Positions 2,677 to 40,602 of a stretch of DNA of 64,000 bases are shown here, piece by piece. Source of the DNA: Paramoeba atlantica (taxonomy: Eukaryota > Protista > Discosea); contig CDRNVI010000098.1 in the NCBI GenBank assembly GCA_977017575.1, positions 1 to 64,000 of the forward strand, given 5' to 3'. How positions within the stretch are numbered: position 1 is the stretch's first letter; every line of letters begins with the position of its first letter. The position numbers were made by a program, and so were the translations under genes. Under the pieces are notes generated by a model. It made no database searches, was not told where the DNA came from, and was given only the letters and a program-made list of their open reading frames with translations.

Positions 2677-3144
2677 TGTTTTATCATGCACTTATAGTGC
2701 AGAGATTTACTCACCATGTCCTTATCCCGCATACGACGGGTGGATCATGTGAGGTTTCGTCCTCGCCGGAGGTGTGCGGGTGCGGAGAGCTGGCGTCCCA
2801 GGTGCAGAGAGCTCGGTTGTCATGTGCAGGTGCAGAGAGCCGGATGCGTAATCCCCATATTACAGTTTCGGGGGCAATCCGGGTGCAGAGAGCTGCGACA
2901 GAGCCGAGGTGCGGAGAGCTGGGCGACCGCCAGGTGCAGAGAGCCGAGTCTCGTCGGCGGAGGACACGTCTAGTGGTCCTCAAGGGAGGCCACCGTGACG
3001 CATGGCCCTCTCGGAGAGGAAAAAGACAAGTCGAAAAAAGCCGAGAGGGGGAAGCACACTCACCCCAGGGGAGTGAGTCGGGGAGGGGTGAAGGGGTGAA
3101 AGCGCGTCCCCTGCTTCAGCGACAAGAGGGACAGTTCCGACCTT
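2677..3144 (-). mobile_element. Element X copy 1: non-coding structured SINE-like retroelement
   Basis: Near-identical to 33307-33775; interrupts an LRR reading frame; 3' CCCG-TCGTATG-CGGG hairpin shared with the LINE 3' UTR; ends GATAAAACA. Confidence 0.8.
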
Positions 3145-3147
3145 TTT

Positions 3148-3204
3148 AATTCAAATACAGATAATTCAATACAGATAATTTCAAATACAGATAATTCAAA
3201 TACA
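3148..3204. repeat. ~4 tandem copies of a ~15-nt target-derived unit (AATTCAAATACAGAT) at the X1 5' junction
   Basis: Read directly; on the minus strand the unit encodes the LRR segment YLNYL. Confidence 0.8.
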
Positions 3205-3854
3205 TACTAGGTAACTTCGTAAGGCATATTTTGCCGGAAAATTCGTTGCTATCCATCCATGCGCCATACAAATTCACAGGCAGAGCTGTGAGGTCTGGAT
3301 TTCCTCTAAATGCATTCCCACTAATGAGCAAATGAGTGAGATCCATGAGAGGAGATAAATCGCTCAGAAATATTTCCCCTGAGAACAAATTGTTGTGAAT
3401 TTCCAAGCGAGTGATCGAGATTGGGATGTATGCAAAGTTGAAGGCCCTCCAAATATCGACAGAACCATTTTTTTTTGTAATTATCTGCTCTGAATTGCAC
3501 TCTATGCCATTCCATTTACAAGGCGCGATATCGGAACTCCAACTCTCATGTTGCGGATGTACGTCAACAATGAGGCGCTCAATATCCATTTCCTGTGGTA
3601 AACGTACGCCACGAATTTTGGCGTTGTTTTAGGGAATGGATTCGGGCAATCCATTTTCTCGTTGCGTAAAAAATATTGCAAAAAAGAAATCAAATCCTAA
3701 TAATTGATCTAGCTTCAATGTATTATTCGTAATTTTGTTCGACTACCAATAGAGGAAAGTTTTGCTTTTCACAGAATGTGTGTACATCGCCCCTCTTGTT
3801 CAACCTAGAGAGAAGCTCCTTATAGAGGGCATATCTTGAAGCTCATTATTATCA

Positions 3855-24106: not shown

Positions 24107-26798
24107 GAGCGAACGCGGGCACAAATTAAGGAATGTCGCAAAGCGATCAAGCTGAGGGAGGAGGAAGCTACAATGCAACGCAGAGAACTAGGTGAAAGAT
24201 GGGCCGCACAGAGATTCTCTAGAAACTCGTGGACCGCGGCATCCGAAACGATTGATAAGCCTAACGGAAGAGAGGTAGAAAACACCGCATTTCCCAGCTG
24301 TGACAGATCTAGCATTGAATCATACTTTCAAGAAAGTTTTAACCCCAATGAGCAATCCTCGCGTCTCCCTCCTTCAGATCTACTAGGTCCGACAGCTAGC
24401 CAGCCAATGCAATGGAACCCGATCTCCCGTGAGGATGTCACTGCAGCTGTCACAATGAAGCGCAACGCCAGTTCTCCAGGAACCGACACGATAACTAACA
24501 AAATACTCAAAAACTGCCCATCGACACGCGAATACTTTGCATCTGTGTTCAACGATCTAATGACTTTCTCTGTGTGCCCGCTATCATGGAAAACCGCAGT
24601 AACCAGGCTGATATATAAAGCAGGTAGCAAAGAAAATCCGAAAAACTGGCGCCCGATCTCCCTTACTAGTGCTCTAGGTAAAACCTTTCACACGATCATC
24701 GCACATCGACTGACTCAACACCTGACTGAACACCATGTCATTGACCCTCAAATACAAAAAGGCTTTCTCCCTTCCATTAACGGTACACTGGAACACACCC
24801 AAACTCTTTGCTCACTCCTGCGACATTACCAGAAACACAAAACTCAATATTGCCTCGCACAACTCGACCTGAGCAATGCCTTCGGGTCTGTCCCACATCA
24901 TATCATACATGCCGCTCTGAAATGGGCCCAAGTACCGCCGGAGGTCATCCACTACATCAAAAATACCCTAACGGATGCGCACATGCGCATTAAGTGCTAC
25001 GAAGGTCTTACGCAACCTATCTCTATACGAAAAGGTGTCCTCCAAGGGGATACCCTCTCTCCTATTGTCTTCCTGATAGTGATGGAAATTGTTTTGCGAT
25101 ATGTCCGATTCTCCTGCCCGCACTTCGGTATGAAACTCCCAAACGGTCTGAACAACTTCCTTAAGGCTTTTGCTGATGACTTAACTATTCTTACTGAAAG
25201 CGACGGAGACATGCAACACGCACTTGATGCAGTTACCAAAGTGCTGGGCGAGCTAAGCCTTAAGATTAACGTGAACAAGAGTCGAATACAGTGCATGAGC
25301 ACCCGTAAAGGCGAGGAACATCCAGGCTATATGACAAGACGTCCGGAAATAAAAGTCTACGGAGAGACCATACCACACATATGTGATGTCGGTAGCACCT
25401 TCCTCGGGATGACCTTGGCACCGGGGTCCCAACAACTGAAAGAGCTGTTTCGTAAACTCGACTCAAAACTAAAACAGTGGATGGAGAACATCACACAAAG
25501 TGCCCACAGCCTTCCCGCTAAGCTTTTGATGTACAAAAATGCCGTTCTCTCACGTCTCCGTTTTCAGTTCGTTATTCACCCGTCGTTAATTTCACCCATC
25601 GTTATTCGGATCCGTGCTACGCCTTCAGAAGCGAGCCACGTCTCACATACGGAAATGGATAAACATGGCGCGTGCCGGAAGCTCTGAAGTCCTGTACTCT
25701 TGCCGAGGCTGGAACCTTACGAGTCTGTCAAAACTTTGGTACGAATGCACGGGAGAATCTATGACGCAAATGAACAAATCCAAAGATCCAAATGTCCTAC
25801 ATACACTTCGCATACGCATACAGGAAGAGCAACACAAACGTCAAAGAGGTCAAATACGACCCGCTACTTTAATTACAGAACATCTGGATGATCCCCGAAT
25901 GACTCGTCAACGGCTTCGTGAAGCACATGAGGAGGAAATAATCACGCGCTTGCAGCAACGCGCGCCCATCGCAGCCCTATGGTGGCAGTTTCCTACGGAT
26001 CCAGAAATGGCCCAAGAATTCGCTTCTGCCATAAATGGGATCCGGAATGCGAAGATCTCCCGCTTTGTAGCATCCGTCATGACTCTTACACCGCTCCCTT
26101 CCCGAGCAGCGCTTGTTCAATGGGGCCGCAGCACCTACAGTAACATGAAATGCCCTATTTGCAACGACCGAGTGCAAACCGTCAGACACACCCTTTCCGC
26201 CTGCACCACTTCACTTCAGCAAGGACGATATACTTTCCGTCATAACCTTGTCCTTGCCGAATTTGCGAAACATATTAGGGAAGCACAGGGAACTGAGTTT
26301 TCATATTTCGACCTACCAGGAGAGCGTAACCCACCAGCTTGGCTGAGGGAACACGATACACTGCTCCGTCCCGACGGTTACATTAAACTTCACAATGGGA
26401 CAGAGTTCCTCATCGAACTCACAGTCCCATGGGAGGAGAATGCGGAGAACGCTCATCGGAGAAAATCCGAGAAGTACAACATCCTTTTACATACACGGCG
26501 ACAGGAAAACCCGGACACCTACATAATAGCCTTTGAAATAGGTGCCCGGGGATTCCCCAATGGGTCATGCAAATATATTAATGCCATCTTTAACGGCGAC
26601 CATATTTTGGCCACAAAGTGTCGAGAAAGCATGACACAGATGGCCCTCAGGGGGAGTTACATACTCTGGGCTCGCCGAAATGAGGCGACATGGTCGGAGG
26701 AGGAAACGTATTGACATTGTCTTCTAAAAAGGGGGCAATCCCGTTGAATGCGGGTCATACCCCCGACTTACTCTACTGGAAAGTATGAAAAATAAAAA
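24107..26798 (+). mobile_element. 5'-truncated RLE-type non-LTR retrotransposon (HERO-like), copy 1
   Basis: RT motifs (NWRPISL, QKGF, DLSNAFGSVPH, GVLQGDTLSP, AFADDL), CPIC..HTLSAC knuckle, RHN, RPDG and ELTVPWE endonuclease; ends ATGAAAAATAAAAA. Confidence 0.92.
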
Positions 26799-26925
26799 TC
26801 TATTTACAGCTATTTCTACTTTGGGACCCTGCACTTTGTGACATGTTTTGGCATTTGTACGACGACTGTTTCACTCCTTTCGTAACGAACCTGCAACAGG
26901 CATCTCCATTTATTTTAAATACATT

Positions 26926-27510
26926 TCAAGACTCCTTTTGAACCCATAATGCAGGAATCTTCCACCATGCTTTAGTTGGAAAAATACTGCGAGCTATTGT
27001 TCCATTAAGCCCAGGATTCCCCAGTATAGCGAGTGTAGCAGTGGGCTTTGCAAGACTCGAGTGCACCAGACAGGAAAGATCCACAAATCCTGTGAATCGA
27101 CAATTCGATACATTTAATATATTAATGTTGGGGGGTAGATGGGTCAAGTCCAGCTCCCCTGTAAATAAATTGTTTTGAACCCACAAGTTCAGCAAAAGTT
27201 CAGGCAGGGCTGAGAAGTCAACATCGCCACCCAACTGATTCGTCATCACCCGGGCTCGTTGTATCGTACGCGGTAAATACAGCCAATGTAATGATCCTTT
27301 CAGCGCACGTGAATACCAGCTTACTTCGCTTATACTTTTAGATTCGTCACATTCCACACCGTTCCACTCGCAGGCAGGCGTATGCGTATCCCACGAGGGG
27401 TGCGGGTTCCTAACATCACGGACAAATTTAGCAAGTTCGTATTCTTGCGGCAGAGCAACGCCCTTTACCTTACCTGCGCGTGTCGCTGAGGATGTAGCAT
27501 CGGCTGCCAT
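26926..27510 (-). CDS. Short LRR protein (subfamily 2)
   Basis: Paralog of 22505 and 39991. Confidence 0.8.
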   Translation of the reverse strand: MAADATSSATRAGKVKGVALPQEYELAKFVRDVRNPHPSWDTHTPACEWNGVECDESKSISEVSWYSRALKGSLHWLYLPRTIQRARVMTNQLGGDVDFSALPELLLNLWVQNNLFTGELDLTHLPPNINILNVSNCRFTGFVDLSCLVHSSLAKPTATLAILGNPGLNGTIARSIFPTKAWWKIPALWVQKES

Positions 27511-27844
27511 AATAGGAGCGAAGAACGTGTCATAATATTCTCGGGAGTGAACTCGGATGAATCAAGACTAGTTCTAGAACAAAAAACATTGCAATCGAAA
27601 TTCTCTCAATCGTTTTCCGTACATTGTGCTGCCCCGCACATAAATAAACTTATAAATGACTATGCAGTTTATCATACCCCCCGGTATTCTGCGAAAGTAC
27701 GGATACCTTATGTTAAATAGCACTATGTAATTGCTGATTAAGTTGATTTGATGATCATGCGCTCGTTGGCACAGATATAATTCCCCTATTGCGATGGCCG
27801 ATATCACCACGAAGGTCCACTCGGGCCCTACATTGGGTCCACTG

Positions 27845-28367
27845 TAAACCCTGTTCTGGGTTAATGTGCCTATAGCTAATTATTGTGCCGGGGGGCACAA
27901 TAAGTGGGAAGGACCGCTATTATTATGCCCCCCGCAAGTAAAAAGGGGTCTTAAGACAATTTTCGCGACTGCTGCAGACCAGGCATTGCGGTAGTCGAAA
28001 AATCTAAACCAAAAAATTCATCACGTTGGCTTGGCATTGACATTTCATAAGTATTTTCGGCCTCTATAACAAAAAGGTACTGCGAAGCGGCGCCATTTTT
28101 TGGGGGGGGGCTTTTTCACGAAGGCTAATTAAAGGGCTGAAACCAGTAAAATGCAAACCCAGGTAAATACAGTCAGGTCCCAAGAGAAACCAATGGCAAA
28201 GGTATCTGGCGTTTTTTCGGTTATGGAGTTCGCTGGAGGATCCGGGTAGGGGGTCTAGGAGGCTACAGTGGGATATATGGAAGGTATTGGGGGTGACTAT
28301 AGCCACGTATTTTGCCTATAGCTGGTTATTGTGCCGGGGGGGGGCACAATTACTCGGAACAGGGTTA
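27845..28367. mobile_element. ~520-bp TA-flanked MITE-like element
   Basis: Imperfect TIRs AACCCTGTTC.G.GT.A.TGTGCC; internal TTATTGTGCC(G)nGCACAAT palindromes. Confidence 0.6.
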
Positions 28368-28671
28368 TTTTGTAATTAATGAGCAGATGTGGGTGAGGCC
28401 AAAACGAGATCACGCGAGATCACATGAGATCGCGCTAGCCCCTCAAATGAAACAGTTTGTTTTCGCAAATCGAAGAAAAGAACCGAATTAGAAGTTTTAA
28501 CTAGAAGACCTTTCTGTTGGAGAGGGGTTACGTTCTAAACATCGAAATGTAAAAGGGGTTCTGACAAGACACATGCATGTACGATCGAGGGGTCACCGCA
28601 ACTACTTTGTCTCTTGCAAAAGGATTGATAAATACTTAAAGTACGTTACTTGTAGAAACTCTGAGAGAATG

Positions 28672-29391
28672 TTACTCTACAACAACAAGATTCGTGTTCG
28701 AAACAATCTTAAGTATATTTTTTTTTAACTCTGGATGAAGTTTACTCACTGCTATTGTACCTTCGAGAAGGGTATTGTTCTCTAATGATAAACTCTCAAG
28801 GTTTTCGGGAAAAAATGAGAAATCAACGAATCCTTCAAAAGTATTGTCAGCCAAGTATAAAGCTTCCAGAGTGCGAGGAAGTGCCCCGAAATTAAGTTTT
28901 TCTGTCAATAAATTATCACTGATGTCCAAATACCACAAATCAGCAGGTAATTGTGTAAGGCATACATCACCATACAATTTATTTCTCTCCAGCCATGCGG
29001 CATTCAAACATTGCGGGAGCTCTGTGAGATCCGGATTTCCTGTGAACGTATTTCTCCCCAGAAAAAAATCTGTCAACTCTTCTAATCGAGAAAAATCGCT
29101 GAGTCCTATTTCACCACCGACAGAGTTGTATTCAATGTCAAAACTGGAAACGGATCTTGGAATATACTGAAATTTCATGAATCCTGTTAACTTTTTACCA
29201 CTCCAGCGTACCTCTTTAATTAGTTTATCTGCATCGCACGCTATGCCTTCCCATTCACAAGCCGAGCGGTCTGCGGTCCAACTCGCTGCTCGGTTATGTA
29301 AACCACTAGTGAGTCTCTCAAGATCGAATTCTTGTGGCACATTCACTGCACGAACCTTTGACGGACATGTTGAACGTTGAGGGTGATCCAT
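28672..29391 (-). CDS. Short LRR protein (239 aa)
   Basis: SWTADRSACEWEGIAC cap, LRRs. Confidence 0.85.
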   Translation of the reverse strand: MDHPQRSTCPSKVRAVNVPQEFDLERLTSGLHNRAASWTADRSACEWEGIACDADKLIKEVRWSGKKLTGFMKFQYIPRSVSSFDIEYNSVGGEIGLSDFSRLEELTDFFLGRNTFTGNPDLTELPQCLNAAWLERNKLYGDVCLTQLPADLWYLDISDNLLTEKLNFGALPRTLEALYLADNTFEGFVDFSFFPENLESLSLENNTLLEGTIAVSKLHPELKKNILKIVSNTNLVVVE

Positions 29392-29690
29392 TTTGCGGGA
29401 GAAGGTTCAGATATTCGGTAGGTAAAATAGACAATAGAATATAAACTTATATTGCTCTTTTGGTAATCAACATGCATGTAGCAGTGTTTGGAAGTTCGTC
29501 CCAATGCAATGCATCTCCAACCGGTAAAACCATTTGAAAAAATAATGAGTATCGTATACCATATACCAAGAGTCAAGTGTACCATATACCAGTGTAAAGT
29601 ACAGGTTAAGGCGAACCTAAACATTTACTTACTCTTTCGGTTCGCTCATCTCGCCTGGTCGGCTTTGTACACAAATGGGATACTGCACCG

Positions 29691-31784
29691 CTACCCGTTG
29701 GCACGTCCCCACGTAGAGCAGCGAATGTACCTTGCCTGCACGCCCTCCTCCGTTTCCCCGTCGTCGTACTCTACGCGATATCGAATGTGTTGAGGCGACA
29801 CCGATCGGTTCGGTTTCACAGGCGACAGCGCTATAATTTTTGCCCGACACCACAGTGTGCCTTGTTGCCACCGCACCTCCACGGTATCCCCCACATTATA
29901 TGGGGCTGCTTTTTGTGTGTTTTCAAATCCAATCGGGTTGGAAGGGGTTTCGAGGCTCAGCCTTGTTGTCGAAGCCATAAAGGTCTCGGATTTGGATGAC
30001 TCGGAAAGTCCAGATACGCCGGTAAAGGGTAACAGGGTAGTGCTGGAGATATTCGAATCGGGTTTCACATCCGTCCGTTTTCGTATACGCGTCGTTTCGG
30101 GGGAGTACACCTCCCTTCTCCTGTCACTGTCTTTGTTGGTAAAATTTGCTATCTTGGGCTCCGGCATGTCAGGAGCAGAGTGTGCAGTGACGTTCGGAGA
30201 GTGGGGATACTCGTTTTGATTTTTCGTCTTTCTGCATTCAGGCTCCTTGACGCAGCCATAATCCATATCCAAACAAAAGCGCGTGCCCTCCTCGAGATAA
30301 TGTCGTGGATTCAGCACAATGAGCACCACCGAAATGTCATCATGGAAGTGACGACGTTTCCCACATGGGATGGAGAGTAGATCGGGAAGACTCATGGCGT
30401 GAGCCGAGGCCACTTTGGTGCGCAGTGCGTGTCGGATTAAGTCCGCGGGCACGGCGCTGCACCACTCACTGGCATCCGCAGCCTCGGGTCGTGCAAAAAC
30501 CCGGAAAGGGCTGGATGCGGTCGAAGAGTCACGATGATGTACAAAGGAGGGAAACTGAGACTCGGCTGGGGTGTGTTTGTGAGTTGAAGGCAATTCTTTT
30601 GACTCCGAGGACGCCTTAATTTGTTCGTCTCTCCACACAACGCTTTTGGAGTGATTCTCCAAGTCTCGGTCCGGCAGGCATTCATCGGTAAATCGTTGAG
30701 CGGCTCTCCTTAACAGCCCGTCCGTGAGATACACAATCTCCTCATTTGTGAGTAAATTATGTAACCCATCGGACATCAAAACTACAAAAAGATCACTAAC
30801 GGAGACCAGACGAGAAGTAATCTCCGGGCTGGCATGGATATAAGGGATATAATCAGAATACGGCGTCATGGAGAGATTTTTATGTTTTAAATAACCGTCC
30901 CCGAGACTCCGGGTGACCATTAAGCTCCCCGCAACCCGCAAAGGGGCGCCTGGGACTTTCAAATGGAAAGGAGTACGGCGTAGGGGGGTGGGATCCGAGG
31001 TGCGGGCTTGAAGATCGGAAACCTCGGATTCGTTCTCAACATCGTGGTCCCGGGTCAGGGGAATGGCCTCGAGTATGGAGATGTATCCGTTCTGTGAGAT
31101 AGAACAGCTGCGCGTGCTCGAAATCCTGGACACGGGTGGCTCCATAGCAGAAAACGAAAATGGCTTTGATTTTTTTGACGCGGGTGAAATGATCCGGATT
31201 TTTTCTTCCTCCGCGAATTGCAAGGATGCGGATTGAGACGCCCTTTTTTCCTTTGAATTTTTACAGAACTGTGCTTCGTTATTTTCCAAATTAGCGTTTC
31301 CATACTCCCGAACAATACGCATCCTACTTCCTGACCTTCCTTTAGAAATTTTCATTTCCTTCGACATTTTCTCATTTTTTTCTGTTTCTTCTTCTCGCGT
31401 AATGCGACGGCGACACAACACAGCTCGACAGTCCCCGACATGGGCTGTCGTAATCCGCTCTTTTCCCAACACCAACGTCAGAGCACACGCCCCGGATGTC
31501 TTCTTCCGTACCCCCTCCGTAGCCAGAAATTCCCTGTCCATGTTCTCGTAGCTCGCGCGTAACGCTGCCTCGATGGAGCTCGCGTTTGTATTGTGGATTT
31601 GAGAAAAATAAGTATCCGCAATTTCGGGAAATTCTGCAGCACAATAGGAGGAGCATACCGGCCCTCCGTGGCCATCAAACAAGGAGAACAAGGCAAGGCT
31701 TTGGTTGCGAACATAGCCGAAGCAAGCGCGGTCCTCGTTGTGGGTGTTGGCTGCGACGGTCGCGAAAGAAACAGGGCGCGTCAT
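29691..31784 (-). CDS. PP2C-family phosphatase with C-terminal Tudor/Agenet-like domain
   Basis: NEDR, LFDGHGG, AHVGDCRAVL, TRSLGDGYLK, SDGL, HDDISV; C-terminus VGDTVEVRW...YRVEYDDGETE. Confidence 0.85.
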   Translation of the reverse strand: MTRPVSFATVAANTHNEDRACFGYVRNQSLALFSLFDGHGGPVCSSYCAAEFPEIADTYFSQIHNTNASSIEAALRASYENMDREFLATEGVRKKTSGACALTLVLGKERITTAHVGDCRAVLCRRRITREEETEKNEKMSKEMKISKGRSGSRMRIVREYGNANLENNEAQFCKNSKEKRASQSASLQFAEEEKIRIISPASKKSKPFSFSAMEPPVSRISSTRSCSISQNGYISILEAIPLTRDHDVENESEVSDLQARTSDPTPLRRTPFHLKVPGAPLRVAGSLMVTRSLGDGYLKHKNLSMTPYSDYIPYIHASPEITSRLVSVSDLFVVLMSDGLHNLLTNEEIVYLTDGLLRRAAQRFTDECLPDRDLENHSKSVVWRDEQIKASSESKELPSTHKHTPAESQFPSFVHHRDSSTASSPFRVFARPEAADASEWCSAVPADLIRHALRTKVASAHAMSLPDLLSIPCGKRRHFHDDISVVLIVLNPRHYLEEGTRFCLDMDYGCVKEPECRKTKNQNEYPHSPNVTAHSAPDMPEPKIANFTNKDSDRRREVYSPETTRIRKRTDVKPDSNISSTTLLPFTGVSGLSESSKSETFMASTTRLSLETPSNPIGFENTQKAAPYNVGDTVEVRWQQGTLWCRAKIIALSPVKPNRSVSPQHIRYRVEYDDGETEEGVQARYIRCSTWGRANG

Positions 31785-32011
31785 ATAAAATCGTACAAAG
31801 TATACCGCAAGGTGATATAAATGGTAAGTCGGAGTTGTGAGTTAGAACTAATTCTTCTTAAACCACCGGTGTGAACTGTAGTTAAGGTTGGTGAAAGAAA
31901 ATGATAATATAATAATAATAATAATGATAATATAATAATAAAGTTTACTTTCTGCAATATTACACATATAACTATGAACAAAAACTAGAAAGATATAGAA
32001 AATTTATTGCT

Positions 32012-32350
32012 TTAGTCTTCCACGGTTATCAGCGTGTTCACCCAACTTTTCTGTCCAGTGCAGCAGTGTTTCTGTCCCTCTAATAGCCAACGGTAGCCCT
32101 GTAAGACGAACCTGTTCATACATTTCTCGATTATCGTCCAACAACAAACCATGCAATCCCCACGGAAGAGCAGCAAAATCGAAAAACCCCGAAAAACGAT
32201 TTTTAGATATACTGTAGATAAGAAGGCTAACGATCGAGGGAGAAGTGATACATCAATTTCCCCAGTAAATAGATTTCCTGTTAAACAAAACGATTCCAGT
32301 CCAGGGGGCAAAACTGTAAAGTCCACTGACCCCGCAAGTCCGCAATAAGC
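32012..32350 (-). pseudogene. LRR gene fragment
   Basis: DFTVLPPGLESFCLTGNLFTGEIDVSLLPRSL, then degenerate. Confidence 0.6.
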
Positions 32351-32370
32351 AGCAGAAAAATGAATGATTA

Positions 32371-33011
32371 TTGATGGAAAGTGCTCTCACTTTAGGTTTC
32401 CACCCAGATCGTACAAGGCCCATTGTATTTCATCGATGTTACCAGAGGAGCTTTGCATTGTTTTTATGCCATTCCACTCACATACAGGATCCTAACATTA
32501 TTCGAAATTCTTCATTATCAATAGCATTCTTACGTATGTATTTTATACGTTCTAACCCTCCTGTCTCCCGGTGGCGTTTAACCCATCGAGAGACAGTTGC
32601 TTCACTGCATTTCGTAAAAGCAGCACTGTCTGCAATCGAACGCCCCTGGTTTTGTATCTCATGGACGCAAAATACACGTGTTTCATAAGTGATTTGTTGC
32701 GTCCAGAAGGTGCGCCTCTGGCGGCGAAGTGTTTTCGGCATAAAATGGGTTAGAAAGAGTTAAATGGTATTTTATTCATAGTTTGATGCGCTAGAATGAC
32801 AAAAAATGATAAAAATCTGATTTTTTGCAGAATTTGTGGTTAAGAATTTCAGTAATTTATTCTCAAGTCGTCATATCTGCTTCAGGGGCGGCAACAATGG
32901 TGCCAGTAGTCTTAAAATTTCGTGATCTGTTGAATGCCGTAGGAATTAGGTCAAAAGCTCGCACGATACAAATTTTAGACCCCCTCCACCTTTTTCGTGA
33001 CCCCCCCTGTA
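32371..33011 (-). mobile_element. Truncated Tc1/IS630-like element (HTH N-terminus); 5' part duplicated at 39537-39880
   Basis: ORF 32478-32741 GRSIADSAAFTKCSEATVSRWVKRHRETG; candidate terminus TA-CAGGGGGGGTC at 33011. Confidence 0.55.
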
Positions 33012-33306
33012 TAGTAGCGATGCCGCATTTTATGCATACCCCCTTACTATTCGCAATAAAAAAAGTTAAGAACACGATCCTACGAATATTGAGACGGATA
33101 GGTTCGCGTAATAAATACGTTTCAAGACTCTTCTTGAATCCACGACGGAGGAATGTTCCACCATGCTCGAGTAGGCATGTGACTCGGGCTATTGTTCCAT
33201 TAAGCCCAGGATTCCCTGTTATGTCGAATCCAGCAACAGGCTTTGCAAGATTCGAGTGCACCAGACAGGAAAGATCCACAAATCCGGTGAATTGACAATT
33301 GGATAG

Positions 33307-33775
33307 TGTTTTATCATGCACTTATAGTGCAGAGATTTACTCACCATGTCCTTATCCCGCATACGACGGGTGGATCATGTGAGGTTTCGTCCTCGCCGGA
33401 GGTGTGCGGGTGCGGAGAGCTGGCGTCCCAGGTGCAGAGAGCTCGGTTGTCATGTGCAGGTGCAGAGAGCCGGATGCGTAATCCCCATATTACAGTTTCG
33501 GGGGCAATCCGGGTGCAGAGAGCTGCGACAGAGCCGAGGTGCGGAGAGCTGGGCGACCGCCAGGTGCAGAGAGCCGAGTCTCGTCGGCGGAGGACACGTC
33601 TAGTGGTCCTCAAGGGAGGCCACCGTGACGCATGGCCCTCTCGGAGAGGAAAAAGACAAGTCGAAAAAAAGCCGAGAGGGGGAAGCACACTCACTCCAGG
33701 GGAGTGAGTCGGGGAGGGGTGAAGTGGTGAAAGCGCGTCCCCTGCTTCAGCGACAAGAGGGACAGTTCCGACCTT
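33307..33775 (-). mobile_element. Element X copy 2
   Basis: Near-identical to 2677-3144; inserted in an LRR segment at GGATA^(CA)TTTAACAC. Confidence 0.8.
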
Positions 33776-33880
33776 AGTGCCGGCCGGCAACGGGCATGAA
33801 AATACAGTAAGAGTATGCCCGTTGCCGGGGAAAGAAAGGATGAACTAAGGAAAAAGTACCAACAAGGTACAGAAACTGTA
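33776..33880 (-). ncRNA. Spliced-leader RNA fragment (last 21 nt of exon plus ~84-nt putative intron)
   Basis: TACAGTTTCTGTACCTTGTTG|GTAC: euglenozoan SL core followed by a GT donor. GTACC-TTGTT-GGTAC stem spans the donor; 14-bp hairpin at 33784-33828. No clear Sm site seen. Confidence 0.65.
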
Positions 33881-34321
33881 GGTCATGATCATACGCTCGT
33901 GGCGCAGAGATACGTCTCTCTGTGTGACGGCCGATACCATCGGCGCATGACCCGCATACGACGGGTGTCACACAGAGAGTGGAGTGCGAGGTAGGAGACG
34001 AGACGCCCATCGGTCATGCTACAGCACGTATAGCCATGGTTCATGCTGCAACACGGTCAAGCCGTGGGTTCATGCTGTCAGATGGTCTATCGTGGATCAT
34101 GATGCATCATGGGGAGGTCCGTTACCGCCGCACTCGCTACAGCATGTAGGGAGAGAGGGGTGCAAGTTCGCATCCCCTATACACGCATACAACGTGTCCT
34201 CCCGCTGTAGCACGCCCAGTGGTCCTCAAGGGAGGCCACCATGGCGCATAGCTCCCGGGAGAAGAAAGCACGAGAAGGAGAGAGCCGGGCTTTAGCACAG
34301 CCGGGCTTTAGAGAGCCGGGC
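33881..34321 (-). mobile_element. Element Y: second structured SINE-like element related to X
   Basis: Shares CCCGCATACGACGGGTG and AGTGGTCCTCAAGGGAGGCCACC with X; otherwise dissimilar. Confidence 0.7.
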
Positions 34322-34381
34322 TTTAACACATCAATGTTGGGAGGTAAATGAGCAAAGTCCAGCTCGCCTGTGAATAAATTG

Positions 34382-37300
34382 TTTTTATTTTTTCATACTT
34401 TCCAGTAGAGTAAGTCGGGGGTATGACCCGCATTCAACGGGATTGCCCCCTTTTTAGAAGACAATGTCAATACGTTTCCTCCTCCGACCATGTCGCCTCA
34501 TTTCGGCGAGCCCAGAGTATGTAACTCCCCCTGAGGGCCATCTGTGTCATGCTTTCTCGACACTTTGTGGCCAAAATATGGTCGCCGTTAAAGATGGCAT
34601 TAATATATTTGCATGACCCATTGGGGAATCCCCGGGCACCTATTTCAAAGGCTATTATGTAGGTGTCCGGGTTTTCCTGTCGCCGTGTATGTAAAAGGAT
34701 GTTGTACTTCTCGGATTTTCTCCGATGAGCGTTCTCCGCATTCTCCTCCCATGGGACTGTGAGTTCGATGAGGAACTCTGTCCCATTGTGAAGTTTAATG
34801 TAACCGTCGGGACGGAGCAGTGTATCGTGTTCCCTCAGCCAAGCTGGTGGGTTACGCTCTCCTGGTAGGTCGAAATATGAAAACTCAGTTCCCTGTGCTT
34901 CCCTAATATGTTTCGCAAATTCGGCAAGGACAAGGTTATGACGGAAAGTATATCGTCCTTGCTGAAGTGAAGTGGTGCAGGCGGAAAGGGTGTGTCTGAC
35001 GGTTTGCACTCGGTCGTTGCAAATAGGGCATTTCATGTTACTGTAGGTGCTGCGGCCCCATTGAACAAGCGCTGCTCGGGAAGGGAGCGGTGTAAGAGGG
35101 AAGGGAGCGGTGTCATGACGGATGCTACAAAGCGGGAGATCTTCGCATTCCGGATCCCATTTATGGCAGAAGCGAATTCTTGGGCCATTTCTGGATCCGT
35201 AGGAAACTGCCACCATAGGGCTGCGATGGGCGCGCGTTGCTGCAAGCGCGTGATTATTTCCTCCTCATGTGCTTCACGAAGCCGTTGACGAGTCATTCGG
35301 GGATCATCCAGATGTTCTGTAATTAAAGTAGCGGGTCGTATTTGACCTCTTTGACGTTTGTGTTGCTCTTCCTGTATGCGTATGCGAAGTGTATGTAGGA
35401 CATTTGGATCTTTGGATTTGTTCATTTGCGTCATAGATTCTCCCGTGCATTCGTACCAAAGTTTTGACAGACTCGTAAGGTTCCAGCCTCGGCAAGAGTA
35501 CAGGACTTCAGAGCTTCCGGCACGCGCCATGTTTATCCATTTCCGTATGTGAGACGTGGCTCGCTTCTGAAGGCGTAGCACGGATCCGAATAACGATGGG
35601 TGAAATTAACGACGGGTGAATAACGAACTGAAAACGGAGACGTGAGAGAACGGCATTTTTGTACATCAAAAGCTTAGCGGGAAGGCTGTGGGCACTTTGT
35701 GTGATGTTCTCCATCCACTGTTTTAGTTTTGAGTCGAGTTTACGAAACAGCTCTTTCAGTTGTTGGGACCCCGGTGCCAAGGTCGTCCCGAGGAAGGTGC
35801 TACCGACATCACATATGTGTGGTATGGTCTCTCCGTAGACTTTTATTTCCGGACGTCTTGTCATATAGCCTGGATGTTCCTCGCCTTTACGGGTGCTCAT
35901 GCACTGTATTCGACTCTTGTTCACGTTAATCTTAAGGCTTAGCTCGCCCAGCACTTTGGTAACTGCATCAAGTGCGTGTTGCATGTCTCCGTCGCTTTCA
36001 GTAAGAATAGTTAAGTCATCAGCAAAAGCCTTAAGGAAGTTGTTCAGACCGTTTGGGAGTTTCATACCGAAGTGCGGGCAGGAGAATCGGACATATCGCA
36101 AAACAATTTCCATCACTATCAGGAAGACAATAGGAGAGAGGGTATCCCCTTGGAGGACACCTTTTCGTATAGAGATAGGTTGCGTAAGACCTTCGTAGCA
36201 CTTAATGCGCATGTGCGCATCCGTTAGGGTATTTTTGATGTAGTGGATGACCTCCGGCGGTACTTGGGCCCATTTCAGAGCGGCATGTATGATATGATGT
36301 GGGACAGACCCGAAGGCATTGCTCAGGTCGAGTTGTGCGAGGCAATATTGAGTTTTGTGTTTCTGGTAATGTCGCAGGAGTGAGCAAAGAGTTTGGGTGT
36401 GTTCCAGTGTACCGTTAATGGAAGGGAGAAAGCCTTTTTGTATTTGAGGGTCAATGACATGGTGTTCAGTCAGGTGTTGAGTCAGTCGATGTGCGATGAT
36501 CGTGTGAAAGGTTTTACCTAGAGCACTAGTAAGGGAGATCGGGCGCCAGTTTTTCGGATTTTCTTTGTTACCTGCTTTATATATCAGCCTGGTTACTGCG
36601 GTTTTCCATGATAGCGGGCACACAGAGAAAGTCATTAGATCGTTGAACACAGATGCAAAGTATTCGTGTGTCGATGGGCAGTTTTTGAGTATTTTGTTAG
36701 TTATCGTGTCGGTTCCTGGAGAACTGGCGTTGCGCTTCATTGTGACAGCTGCAGTGACATCCTCACGGGAGATCGGGTTCCATTGCATTGGCTGGCTAGC
36801 TGTCGGACCTAGTAGATCTGAAGGAGGGAGACGCGAGGATTGCTCATTGGGGTTAAAACTTTCTTGAAAGTATGATTCAATGCTAGATCTGTCACAGCTG
36901 GGAAATGCGGTGTTTTCTACCTCTCTTCCGTTAGGCTTATCAATCGTTTCGGATGCCGCGGTCCACGAGTTTCTAGAGAATCTCTGTGCGGCCCATCTTT
37001 CATCTAGATCTCTGCGTTGCATTGTAGCTTCCTCCTCCCTCAGCTTGATCGCTTTGCGACATTCCTTAATTTGTGCCCGCGTTCTCTCGCGTTCCGCCCG
37101 GTTCCTCGTGTAACGTAGCGATCGTTTCATCGTTTCTAAATGGTGTTTGAGATCGGTTACGGTTCTTTCCGCCGCGAGTGGTCGGTATCTACGTCGTGCA
37201 TGTCCGGTACTGGTCCTTATCAGGAAACCTTTCGTCGGATTTGCTTCTATGGCGACTTCATGTGCTGAGACTGCTAATGCGGCACTGAGTAATTCCGCGT

Positions 37301-39504
37301 TTCGTACAGCTGCCTCTTTATCCGGTGTAGGGGTAAGTAGTTGAATGCATCTCTCTTTCGCTCTCGATTCGACAATCCGCCACTGTACCTCATTTAGTCG
37401 TATCGTAACCTTACCTCCGCTTATGGCTTCGTGCTTCTGGAGAAGTTGCGTTTGCAATCTGGTTCGAGAGTAGGCTTCTTGCTCGGGGGAGGCAGGGTAC
37501 TCTGCAGCCGGAGGAGGGCTGTTCGGGTGCTGGATGGCTGCTGCATCGGTCTCTGAGTCTTCGGTGTCTCTTTGCGTAGTGTTCCTCCGGGCATACACTG
37601 GTCCGTATACTTTGCAGCACTTGTGGGCACATTCCACTTTGTTTCGACATGTGTGCTGACACGGGTGCAAACTAAGCTTCGTAGGTGCCCTACTGATAGT
37701 TTGGATGCGGTGAGGGGATGCTTCTCGGCGCGGGTTCTTTTCATAGTGTACGTCTGAGGGATCTTCCTCCCGCTTATGTAGTGTAATATGCAGATGTTGA
37801 AGGAGGGGCACATCCCGTCCGGCAAGAACCTTGAGGATTGCGCGGCCGAGTGCTCCCGCGGAGCTGTATGACTCACCAAGTTTGAAGGTATCATCTTTGT
37901 AGAGGGAAGTCCAGCTGGCGTGCCGTCGGTGTTCTTGCGCGTGCGCTTGTTTTACAACCCTTATGTAGTCACATCCCTGGTGATCCATGAGCTCGTCCAG
38001 TGAGGCTGGCTGAACAATTAGGTCGTGGGAGCTTCCGTTCCCTGAAAGCATTTTACTGAGTGCCGCTTGCGCTGCTTGATGAGAAGCAATTCTGGCCTTG
38101 ACTAGAGGGGATTCGCTGGCGGCCCGGACGTCTGGAAAATACCGCCAGGTGAGATCTGTGAGTGTTCTTATTTTTAAGGGGCGCGCCCGGCTTTGGACAA
38201 AATGAAGATTTTGTTTGTGTTGAAGCGATGCACTCAGTCCAGTAGGTGTTGTGGCGGCGTCATCTAGGTTTCCCGAGTGTTGGTTGTTGAACACCCAGGT
38301 GGGAACTTCGTCCGTGCTTTCTTCCAGTAGGATGTGATGGTCTACGGAGACGCTAGGTACCGGTAGTGGGGAAGGGAGGCGAGCGAGCACCTCGGGATAC
38401 AGAGATTCTGTATTTTGGTTTTCGTATCCAGGGATCTCGTCGTTTTTAGTGGCACTGCATGAGGTAGCTATCGAGGCGTCGTTTTTGCTGTCGCAGTTTG
38501 GTTGCTCGGGAGCGCGATTTTCAAGGTGCAATAGTGGATTCGTACAATTGGGTTCATCATTCTCTGCTTGTACATTATGCGCGCTTGGAGCTTTGGGGGT
38601 AAGGAAGTCTATGTACCAGAGAAAGATGCGTAGTGGTAATTTTACAAGTTCCAAAATGATGGTCGATGTTGATGTCTTCTTGGTCTTCGCAAGTAGCAAC
38701 CAAAGTTCATCGTATTTCCGTGAGACAGGCGTTTTGAAGTTGGAGAGGGTTAGATAGATCTGGTTGATTGCCACTGGAACTAGAGGTATGCTGCTTCGCA
38801 AAAGACTGAGCGCATACCATGTGAGTGCGAATATTAAGTGGACAAGTGTGCAGAATAGTTTCATGAGGTACTTCACGTTATGAAATAGTATTGCAACCTT
38901 GAGGGTCTGCTCCGTGTAGGGGTTGCTCGTTTGATCTGGAGTAGTGTGTACTAAGTGGCGTTTGCAGCAGGCATGCTTGCATGTGTTTTTGTTTAGACAT
39001 TTATGTTTACATGGCTTCGTTTGAGGTGGTTCTGTAGAGTTTCAGCAATATGCAGGTTGGGTTACGAAGTAGGGTATTTTCATGAATATTGTCGCCAGTA
39101 ATGCTTCGATGATGCAATATACTCTCCCGAAGAATCTCGGTGGGGTGCTTATATTCGTCAAGTTCGGTGCTGTAGGAATATCGATTTTGTTTATGCGAGG
39201 CTGTTGCCTCTTACAACACGGGTGAAGACATGTTCGTTTGTTGAGGCACCTGTGTTTACATGGTGTTCCGTGGGTCATGGGGGTTTGCGGTACCATATTT
39301 GCAGTCACTAGTTCGGTTGGCGTGACGCATGATGGTGGTTCGGAGGGGGCACCATTCTCGTCGACGGGACGTCCATGGTCTAAGAGATCAACGGTTGACA
39401 TATCAACGCCGCGTGGTCCTCCCGTAAGGTCCTGCGGCGCATCAGCATGAGTGCAATGTGAAGGGGGTCGCGTCATTGTAACGATAAAGATAAGAGAAAA
39501 AAAA
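34382..39504 (-). mobile_element. Full-length RLE-type non-LTR retrotransposon (HERO-like), copy 2
   Basis: ATG at 39476; in-frame TGA at 39042-39044; Cys/His fingers; RT (ORF 35508-38876); frameshifts; RLE (34467-35216); 3' tail identical to copy 1. Confidence 0.92.
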
Positions 39505-39536
39505 CAACAAGGTACAGAAACTGTATCTTTATCGTT
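39505..39536 (-). other. SL exon at the 5' end of LINE copy 2
   Basis: AACGATAAAGATACAGTTTCTGTACCTTGTTG; last 21 nt identical to 33860-33880; not followed by GT. Confidence 0.8.
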
Positions 39537-40237
39537 CAAATTACACGTGTTTCATAAGTGATTTGTTGCGTCCAGAAGGTGCGCCTCTGGCGGCGAAGTG
39601 TTTTCGGCATAAAATGGGTTAGAAAGAGTTAAATGGTATTTTATTCATAGTTTGATGCGCTAAAATGACAAAAAATGATAAAAATCTGATTTTTTGCAGA
39701 ATTTGTGGTTAAGAATTTCAGTAATTTATTCTCAAGTCGTCATATCAGCTTCAGGGGCGGCAACAATGGTGCCAGTAGTCTTAAAATTTCGAGATCTGTT
39801 GAATGCCGTAGGAATTAGGTCAAAAGCTCGCACGATACAAATTTTAGACCCCCTCCACCTTTTTCGTGACCCCCCCTGTATAGTAGCGATGCCGCATTTT
39901 ATGCATACCCCCCTACTATTCGCAATAAAAAAAGTTAAGAACACGATCCTACGAATATTGAGACGCATAGGTTCGCGTAATAAATACGTTTCAAGACTCT
40001 TCTTGAATCCACGACGGAGGAATGTTCCACCATGCTCGAGTAGGCATGTGACTGCGGGCTATTGTTCCATTAAGCCCAGGATTCCCTGTTATGTCGAATC
40101 CAGCAACAGGCTTTGCAAGATTCGAGTGCACCAGACAGGAAAGATCCACAAATCCGGTGAATTGACAATTGGATACATTTAACACATCAATGTTGGGAGG
40201 TAAATGGGCAAAGTCCAGCTCTCCTGTGAATAAATTG
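39537..40237. repeat. Right copy of the ~700-bp direct repeat
   Basis: See 32668-34381. Confidence 0.85.
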
Positions 40238-40602
40238 TTTTGAACCCACAAGTTCAGCAAAAGTTCAGGCAGGGCTGAGAAGTCAACATCGCCACCCAAC
40301 TGATTCGTCATCACCCGGGCTCGTTGTATCGTACGCGGTAAATACAGCCAATGTAATGATCCTTTCAGCGCACGTGAATACCAGCTTACTTCGCTTATAC
40401 TTTTAGATTCGTCACATTCCACACCGTTCCACTCGCAGGCAGGCGTATGCGTATCCCACGAGGGGTGCGGGTTCCTAACATCACGGACAAATTTAGCAAG
40501 TTCGTATTCCTGCGGCAGAGCAACGCCCTTTACCTTACCTGGGCGCGCTGCTGGGGGTGTAGCGTCGGCTGCCTCACACAATAGGAGCGAAGAACGTGGC
40601 AT
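39991..40602 (-). CDS. Short LRR protein (subfamily 2), intact
   Basis: Paralog of 22505 and 26926. Confidence 0.8.
   Translation of the reverse strand: MPRSSLLLCEAADATPPAARPGKVKGVALPQEYELAKFVRDVRNPHPSWDTHTPACEWNGVECDESKSISEVSWYSRALKGSLHWLYLPRTIQRARVMTNQLGGDVDFSALPELLLNLWVQNNLFTGELDFAHLPPNIDVLNVSNCQFTGFVDLSCLVHSNLAKPVAGFDITGNPGLNGTIARSHMPTRAWWNIPPSWIQEES

Follow-up and report, generated by a model that had tools for sequence, protein, structure and literature searches.

A spliced-leader-headed retroposon and a truncated sister element at one LRR target beside an R2-like LINE: a probable case of successive insertion

The block of 1,015 bp that interrupts an LRR gene on contig C98 is best read as two retroposon copies lying head to tail, and it is probable that a spliced-leader-headed element, SL-X, was inserted first and that a second element, Y, arrived later at the same LRR target. 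What had been taken for a fragment of spliced leader (SL) RNA with a putative intron, followed by a separate element X, is a single 574-bp retroposon family. The window referred to throughout is the whole 64,000-nucleotide stretch of C98 that was analysed, and the genome searched comprises 45.7 Mb in 248 contigs. The features of the locus, together with the three states in which the target is found, are collected in Table 1.

Table 1. Features of the interrupted LRR locus and states of the target site (coordinates are those of the window)
Feature	Position	Strand	Remarks
LRR copy B, part downstream of the insertion	32668..33306	-	~99% identical to 39537-40175 and to C101
SL-X, full-length 574-bp SL-headed SINE-like retroposon, one unit	33307..33880	-	at least 30 copies sharing both ends
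X 3' tail module, small hairpin then conserved ATGA-type end	33307..33400	-	aligns with Y, Z, X' and LINE tails
15-nt stretch, starts GTAC, ends in pyrimidine run + AG	33845..33859	-	not SL intron
SL-X head, last 21 nt of the 38-nt SL exon	33860..33880	-	exact match; GA missing relative to C101 copies
Y, 3' 409 nt of a ~620-nt sister retroposon family	33881..34289	-	5'-truncated; without its own SL head and 5' hairpin
Reiterated 5' junction of Y, 32 nt	34290..34321	-	read directly; in no other Y copy
59-bp LRR fragment separating the LINE tail from the Y/X insertion	34322..34380	-	encodes ...GELDFAHLPPNIDVL; collinear with C101
R2-like (RLE-type) LINE, 5.2 kb, presumed RT source	34381..39536	-	RVT_1 match; SL head
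Empty target site, LRR copy A	40171..40185	-	uninterrupted copy read directly
Empty state	40171 in window		no insertion
X-only state	C101, two copies		SL-X
Y + X state	window		Y then SL-X

The interruption can be read directly against an intact counterpart. In LRR copy A the site is uninterrupted and reads GTGTTAAA-TG-TATCC on the minus strand, while in copy B the same site is split by 1,015 bp at 33307-34321, or by 1,016 bp if an extra C at 33306 is counted. The TG is absent from the interrupted copy, its two bases being replaced by the block, and no target-site duplication was seen at the block in the sequence read. Thus, by comparison with copy A, the insert is real and two target bases were lost. 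Followed along the minus strand, LRR codons run up to GATGTGTTAAA (34322 upward), the insert extends from 34321 to 33307, and the extra C leads into TATCCAATTG. Within the insert, Y (34321-33881) is followed by a 21-nt piece of the SL exon and then by X. An earlier, sequence-only reading had described an LRR site split by about 1,015 bp and filled by Y, an SL-exon piece and X in head-to-tail order, and both points are borne out; its division of the block into three parts is not, as 33880-33307 is one repeat unit.

The LRR segment itself forms a direct repeat of ~705 bp flanking the LINE (39537-40241 and 32668-34380), an arrangement which resembles a target-site duplication of great length. Its upstream copy has nothing inserted at the X site, and its downstream copy carries Y and X. 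The four LRR copies, two in the window and two on C101, differ at ~12 sites, in a pattern that groups window copy B with the C101 copies.

A search with the whole block returned at least 30 genomic places that match block positions 442-1015 only, over 574 bp, at 97-100% identity and with unrelated flanks. The string with which SL-X begins immediately after the leader occurs in exact form 34 times genome-wide, and SL sequence precedes it in 34 of 34. The length of SL retained at SL-X heads ranges from 0 to 36 nt among copies, with a cluster at AAAGATACAG..., and the C101 heads keep 23-27 nt. In the window, 33880-33860 corresponds exactly to the last 21 nt of the genuine 38-nt exon, as judged against the SL genes on C97 and C107, so that this part of the sequence-only reading was right; a complete 38-nt exon was not found in the block. 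The limits earlier given to X, 33775-33307, had been taken from a 5'-truncated copy at an LRR site elsewhere in the window (2677-3144), which matches X as then defined. At the 5' junction of that truncated copy (3145-3205), the final 12 nt of the target form the basis of a 15-nt unit that is reiterated four times.

The window SL-X agrees with the family majority at all sites except one T-run, and no private mutations were found in it from which it could be dated. In three X copies (L023, L028 and L029), exactly the 15 nt that follow the exon piece are absent and the SL exon is fused to the next base; the AG ending this stretch appears to serve as a trans-splice acceptor in some sister copies. 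Open reading frames of 133-149 aa inside X and Y have no Pfam match. Rfam gave no match on the window or on the block, and no tRNA, 5S or 7SL-derived head and no pol III promoter was found.

The Y part of the block had been placed at 34321-33881, of which 409 nt (34289-33881) do belong to a Y family and the first 32 nt are a reiteration of the junction. Y positions 33-441 have at least 40 genomic matches at 98-100% identity, several of them at 100%, and exact Y tails number 33 genome-wide. Full-length Y elements with an SL head are found at L043/L045 and L022 and share the layout of X, in which a leader head and a short GTA...AG stretch are followed by a long hairpin, then by the body and finally by a tail with a hairpin. 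Because these full-length members are ~620 nt long and of the same design as X, the window Y represents the 3' two-thirds of a Y element. Its junction unit, of 15-16 nt, combines the last 5 bases of the flank (TAAAG) with the first 10-11 nt of the truncated Y and occurs three times in all. No private mutations were seen in the window Y. At two related loci, L022:718-1475 and L024 (contigs C56 and C31), a hybrid element is found in which 477 nt of Y-type sequence at the 5' side are joined to an X'-type 3' part at a point where the families share sequence; recombination could account for it, as could a switch of template from one passenger RNA to another.

The LINE is located directly upstream of the Y/X block on the same strand. 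Its RVT_1 domain is recognised by Pfam with E=3.3e-31, and its best match among solved structures is the Bombyx R2 protein (E=3.8e-27), compared with ~1e-17 for L1 ORF2. The C-terminal open reading frame holds a Cys/His motif followed by an RPD...E motif, both read by eye, with no significant database match. In the window copy the coding region is broken and spread over three reading frames. At its 5' end (39505-39536), nt 7-38 of the SL exon are joined straight to the body, with no GT between them. The tails of the LINE, X, Y, X' and Z align with one another, each having a small CCCG...CGGG hairpin and then a conserved ...ATGA... end; they finish in ...AAAACA or ...ACC and carry no poly(A). 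From the tail they have in common with it, X and Y are taken to be putatively non-coding passengers of the R2-like LINE beside them. The window also contains the 3' part of a second LINE, oppositely oriented, at 25097-26806 (+); it is 98.3% similar to the C101 LINE, the corresponding figure for the collinear window LINE being 97.7%.

The order of the two insertions is read from contig C101. Positions 30000-39999 of C101 are collinear with 25615-36098 of the window at 98.8% identity, through a stretch that includes a unique downstream gene and the LINE tail, and the sole difference is the absence from C101 of the 440 bp of Y. Thus C101 carries X without Y at the same site, and does so in two copies. 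The joint there reads GTGTTAAA-GA-TACAG..., which is a typical SL-X head; the GA is absent in the window. That the X-only state is ancestral to the state with both elements is argued by several features of these joints. Deletion of Y from the window state could not have recreated the GA. The TAAAG of the Y junction unit fits the upstream sequence only if the X head, which supplies the G, was already present, since the empty site reads TAAAT. The second event lost one or two nucleotides beside the same TTAAA at which the first event lost its two. Finally, Y and X meet at nt 18 of the SL, as in the joints between elements and flanks, and not at an RNA 5' end.

The comparison of the X sequences themselves is less telling. 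Three sites distinguish the X of the window from that of C101. At two of them the family is polymorphic, which is what independent insertions could be expected to give; yet these two vary even within pairs of copies that go back by duplication to one insertion (L017/L021 and L022/L024), and both are prone to homoplasy, one being a T-run and the other lying in an internally repeated motif. As a clock, the LRR flank shows 7 differences in 705 bp and X shows 3 in 574 bp where ~5.7 would be expected, a contrast that is not decisive. The upstream LRR copy on C101 (L008:2075-2542; C101:44584-45051) carries a 413-bp LINE 3' fragment and X at both of the sites used in the downstream copy, and a private G is common to both C101 X copies. 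Duplication or gene conversion within the C101 locus is suggested by these sequences.

A mechanism by which successive insertion might have come about can be proposed on the model of target-primed reverse transcription. The LINE protein would nick the LRR site and copy X and Y RNAs into it, the 5' end of each being joined through microhomology between the copy of the leader and the A-rich upstream end of the target. SL-X would have been inserted first, with the loss of two LRR bases, giving the state that is kept on C101. As the upstream half of the LRR target was left unchanged, it could later have been cut again and Y copied in. On that occasion the reverse transcriptase would have dropped off Y early and the 5' join would have stuttered, leaving three copies of the 15-nt junction unit, and one or two bases of the X head would have been lost in the same way as two LRR bases at the first insertion.

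The rival with most in its favour is a single event at the empty LRR site, in which X RNA was copied, the enzyme jumped to the 3' end of a Y RNA and the product was then joined to the target, the X on C101 being a separate insertion at a hot spot. This account keeps some chance of being right and is nevertheless doubtful. R2 reverse transcriptase jumps from template to template, end to end and serially, in vitro (PMC8857657; bioRxiv 10.1101/2021.04.30.442027). The LRR site is a hot spot, neither element in the window has a private mutation, and two of the three X differences from C101 are the family polymorphisms described above. Spacer-free arrays, moreover, are present far above chance frequency. 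They include X|Y'|Z'|X' on C69, Y'|X' on C64, Z|X on C23 and Z|Y on C40; in addition, some units are nearly adjacent, the Y/X' hybrid on C56/C31 being separated by 11-18 nt from an X, and a Z tail, 18 nt and a head recurring on C11, C24 and C65. As some of the arrays lie away from LRR sites (those on C23, C40 and C64) and the array of four units on C69 is made up for the most part of units truncated at the 5' end, template jumping explains them more easily. Against a single event at the window locus, collinear copies would have to have been hit twice, independently, at one and the same nucleotide and with identical bases at the 3' junction, and what C101 carries at that nucleotide is X alone, neither an empty site nor the whole block. 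The joint at SL nt 18 is not at a capped 5' end, whereas the RNAs carry up to 38 nt of SL, though a degraded template could give the same result; of the seven internal joints seen, not one has a full leader. A single event would also require that the G in TAAAG, within the junction unit, was added without a template.

Both re-use of sites and template jumping may operate in this genome. A broader proposal is that the Y-X dimer and the arrays on C69, C23, C40 and C64 are all fossils of single integrations, made by end-to-end jumps on leader-capped passenger RNAs in vivo. This is unlikely; if it were true, serial template jumping by a site-specific LINE would be naturally recorded in this genome.

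The successive-insertion reading depends on one target being used twice, and the choice of target can be followed across the family. When upstream flanks were translated, 13 of ~30 independent heads were found at a single LRR codon register, after G.LDL..LP..L..L, and this register is the same whether 36 nt of leader are kept or none. Because the register is constant whatever the length of the head, the upstream break is fixed by the target. The length of the head would then be set by truncation or microhomology. The truncated X at 2677-3144 likewise occupies a site of this kind.

It had been suggested as an alternative that Y was inserted site-specifically into an SL exon, as are CRE/SLACS/NeSL elements; on such a reading, with specificity of the CRE/SLACS/CZAR kind, the X head would have offered the SL target. 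The part of this suggestion which makes Y a separate insertion comes nearer to the evidence, but targeting of the SL exon does not, the target being the LRR codon register, and specificity of Y or its enzyme for the SL exon is distinctly improbable. Y does adjoin SL-derived sequence here, and the ATAAAG in the SL exon resembles the A-rich target ends. Of the 33 exact Y tails in the genome, however, a single one has an intact SL core no more than 25 nt away, and one more, on C64, sits beside a damaged head. Genuine SL genes in the loci read have complete exons. Some SL units on C74 (L045:1256-5944) do carry a 4.7-kb insertion, which includes a Y-type element in the opposite orientation, but it is placed ~340 bp downstream of the SL gene start and not inside the exon. 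With the SL genes that were read intact, no poly(A) tail, no target-site duplication and insertions that track LRR codons, a CRE/SLACS-type insertion was rejected.

A mis-join of Y to X during assembly is very improbable. Both elements are high-copy repeats and the contig is small; against this, Y gives way on its 5' side to unique LRR sequence without a break, the junction unit between them being made of bases from the flank and from Y alike, and the flanks on both sides of the block are collinear with C101.

The nature of the SL piece was settled by comparison with genuine SL RNA genes. A genome search located tandem arrays of these on C97 and C107, with a period of ~2.56 kb, and further copies on C3, C11, C24 and C74; each array unit also contains a 5S rRNA gene on the opposite strand (e.g. 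L042:1821-4375 on C107, a unit of 2.56 kb). The genuine exon is 38 nt long, and the intron starts with GTATGAGAAGC... and ends in a T-run. Across the genome, 37 SL-core sites have the genuine intron start GTAT, and the exon is complete in every genuine SL gene among the loci read. The 84 nt following the exon piece in the block (33859-33776) had been proposed as an SL intron. In global alignment with the real intron they score -14, compared with -15.1 +/- 4.4 for shuffled sequences, 215 of 500 shuffles reaching the same score. Aligned locally with the SL intron, the heads of X, Y and Z likewise score within the shuffle range. The sole match is the GTA after the exon piece, which agrees with the first three bases of the intron. 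Because the genuine SL intron differs from 33776-33859, the claim falls. With it goes the proposal of a triple template jump that captured a free mature SL RNA, exon and intron, between Y and X, which is almost certainly wrong in spite of the shared GTA, as the SL intron bears no relation to the 84 nt that follow the exon and the 'SL + GTAC...' head is built into the X family, being present in 34 family copies and on the C101 X, which has no Y. An R2-type mechanism, also invoked in the sequence-only reading, stays relevant through the small-scale template switching visible at the 5' junction of Y, though not for the capture of SL RNA.

A solitary SL RNA copy is present at L033 (the C6:27086-27108 region), where exon nt 3-38 and the genuine intron end in an A-run in place of the T-run and the SL promoter flank is absent; this may be a retro-copy of the SL RNA itself.

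The SL heads of the elements themselves are scars of trans-splicing, the RNAs that were copied into DNA having been trans-spliced. SL-X begins with 21 nt of the SL exon because the family RNA carries a trans-spliced leader at the time of its reverse transcription. Several features show this. The join between leader and body in the LINE, which has no GT, looks like that of a trans-spliced mRNA. In L023, L028 and L029 the leader runs directly into the first base beyond the AG that closes the 15-nt stretch. On C84, all 38 nt of the leader are fused to a different body. The genome also contains 14 tandem relics, in which a leader end is followed by a leader from TTTCTG on (e.g. L011:1490-1520 on C37), and a reversed control gave none. 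These tandem relics indicate re-splicing onto an AG within an older leader head. The fusion on C84 (L019/L020), ~960 bp from X copies, consists of the complete leader on an unrelated pyrimidine-rich body with an A-rich run before it, and is apparently another retro-copied trans-spliced RNA.

In the main forms of X, Y and Z, the leader is followed by GTA. Two sources for this arrangement were considered and rejected. A source gene with an AG before the GTAC is contradicted by the leader's TG, which precedes 34 of 34 heads. For a master copy in an SL gene, driven by the SL promoter, the one locus pair with at least 36 nt of SL before GTAC proved to be Y-type at an LRR site. A possible route is that re-splicing occurs at the AG of a relic head and that a 16-nt direct repeat then collapses during reverse transcription, which would regenerate the standard head.

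If the order of events is as proposed, a single target of an R2-like element can be seen in succession empty (40171), occupied by X alone (C101) and occupied by Y + X (the window), and cut geometry, small target losses, microhomology joins and stuttered 5' junctions can be read from these three states. The locus also contributes to the description of a system in which trans-spliced RNAs serve as templates for the reverse transcription of a LINE and its passengers, LRR codons being the sites to which these home. A literature search returned no description of an SL-headed LINE with passengers homing to LRR codons in kinetoplastids, and no paper was found for the leader sequence. If occupied sites are cut again, this would explain both the building of arrays and the erosion of the LRR gene family.

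Among known systems, the likeness to R2 is the most extensive. Bombyx R2 gives the closest match to the RT of any solved structure, the tail at the 3' end is structured and lacks poly(A), the insertion site is defined, target deletions are small, 5' junctions are stuttered, and the C-terminal order of a Cys/His motif and then RPD...E, as read by eye, is the same. In contrast to R2, whose target is the 28S rDNA, the element described here uses a codon register of a protein-coding LRR family, its copies start with a spliced-leader relic, and its enzyme has putatively non-coding passengers.

The sharing of a 3' tail between a LINE and a SINE is characteristic of stringent-type pairs such as UnaL2 and UnaSINE1 of the eel, and the short elements here similarly end in the hairpin tail of an autonomous LINE. 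Unlike in that pair, the head here is a trans-spliced leader, and neither a tRNA, 5S or 7SL-derived head nor a pol III promoter is present. Chimeric retrocopies of the U6-L1 type arise by template switching of L1 and resemble the block in that two RNA-derived units are joined head to tail with no spacer; here, however, a collinear copy exists with the 3' unit alone, which favours two events.

CRE1/CRE2, SLACS and CZAR are kinetoplastid LINEs that interrupt the SL RNA gene at a fixed position in the exon, with target-site duplications and poly(A) (PMC12278014). Like them, the present elements are found in a host of kinetoplastid type, involve an RLE-type LINE and are associated with SL sequence. 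They differ in that the SL sequence belongs to the element, whose 5' end it forms; insertion is into LRR genes, with the SL genes seen left intact; and there is neither a poly(A) tail nor a target-site duplication.

Dinoflagellate retrogenes provide the precedent for the heads, since DNA copies of trans-spliced RNAs keep 5' leader relics in these organisms and re-splicing produces tandem relics (PMC6050394, PMC5585692). Both kinds of relic are found here, 14 of them in tandem. The RNAs recycled here, however, are those of a LINE and its putatively non-coding passengers in a kinetoplastid-type genome, not cellular mRNAs, and the relics are usually trimmed by microhomology at the target. By analogy with these systems, the elements at this locus may be regarded as an R2-type site-specific LINE with passengers of the stringent 3'-tail kind and leader relics like those of dinoflagellates.
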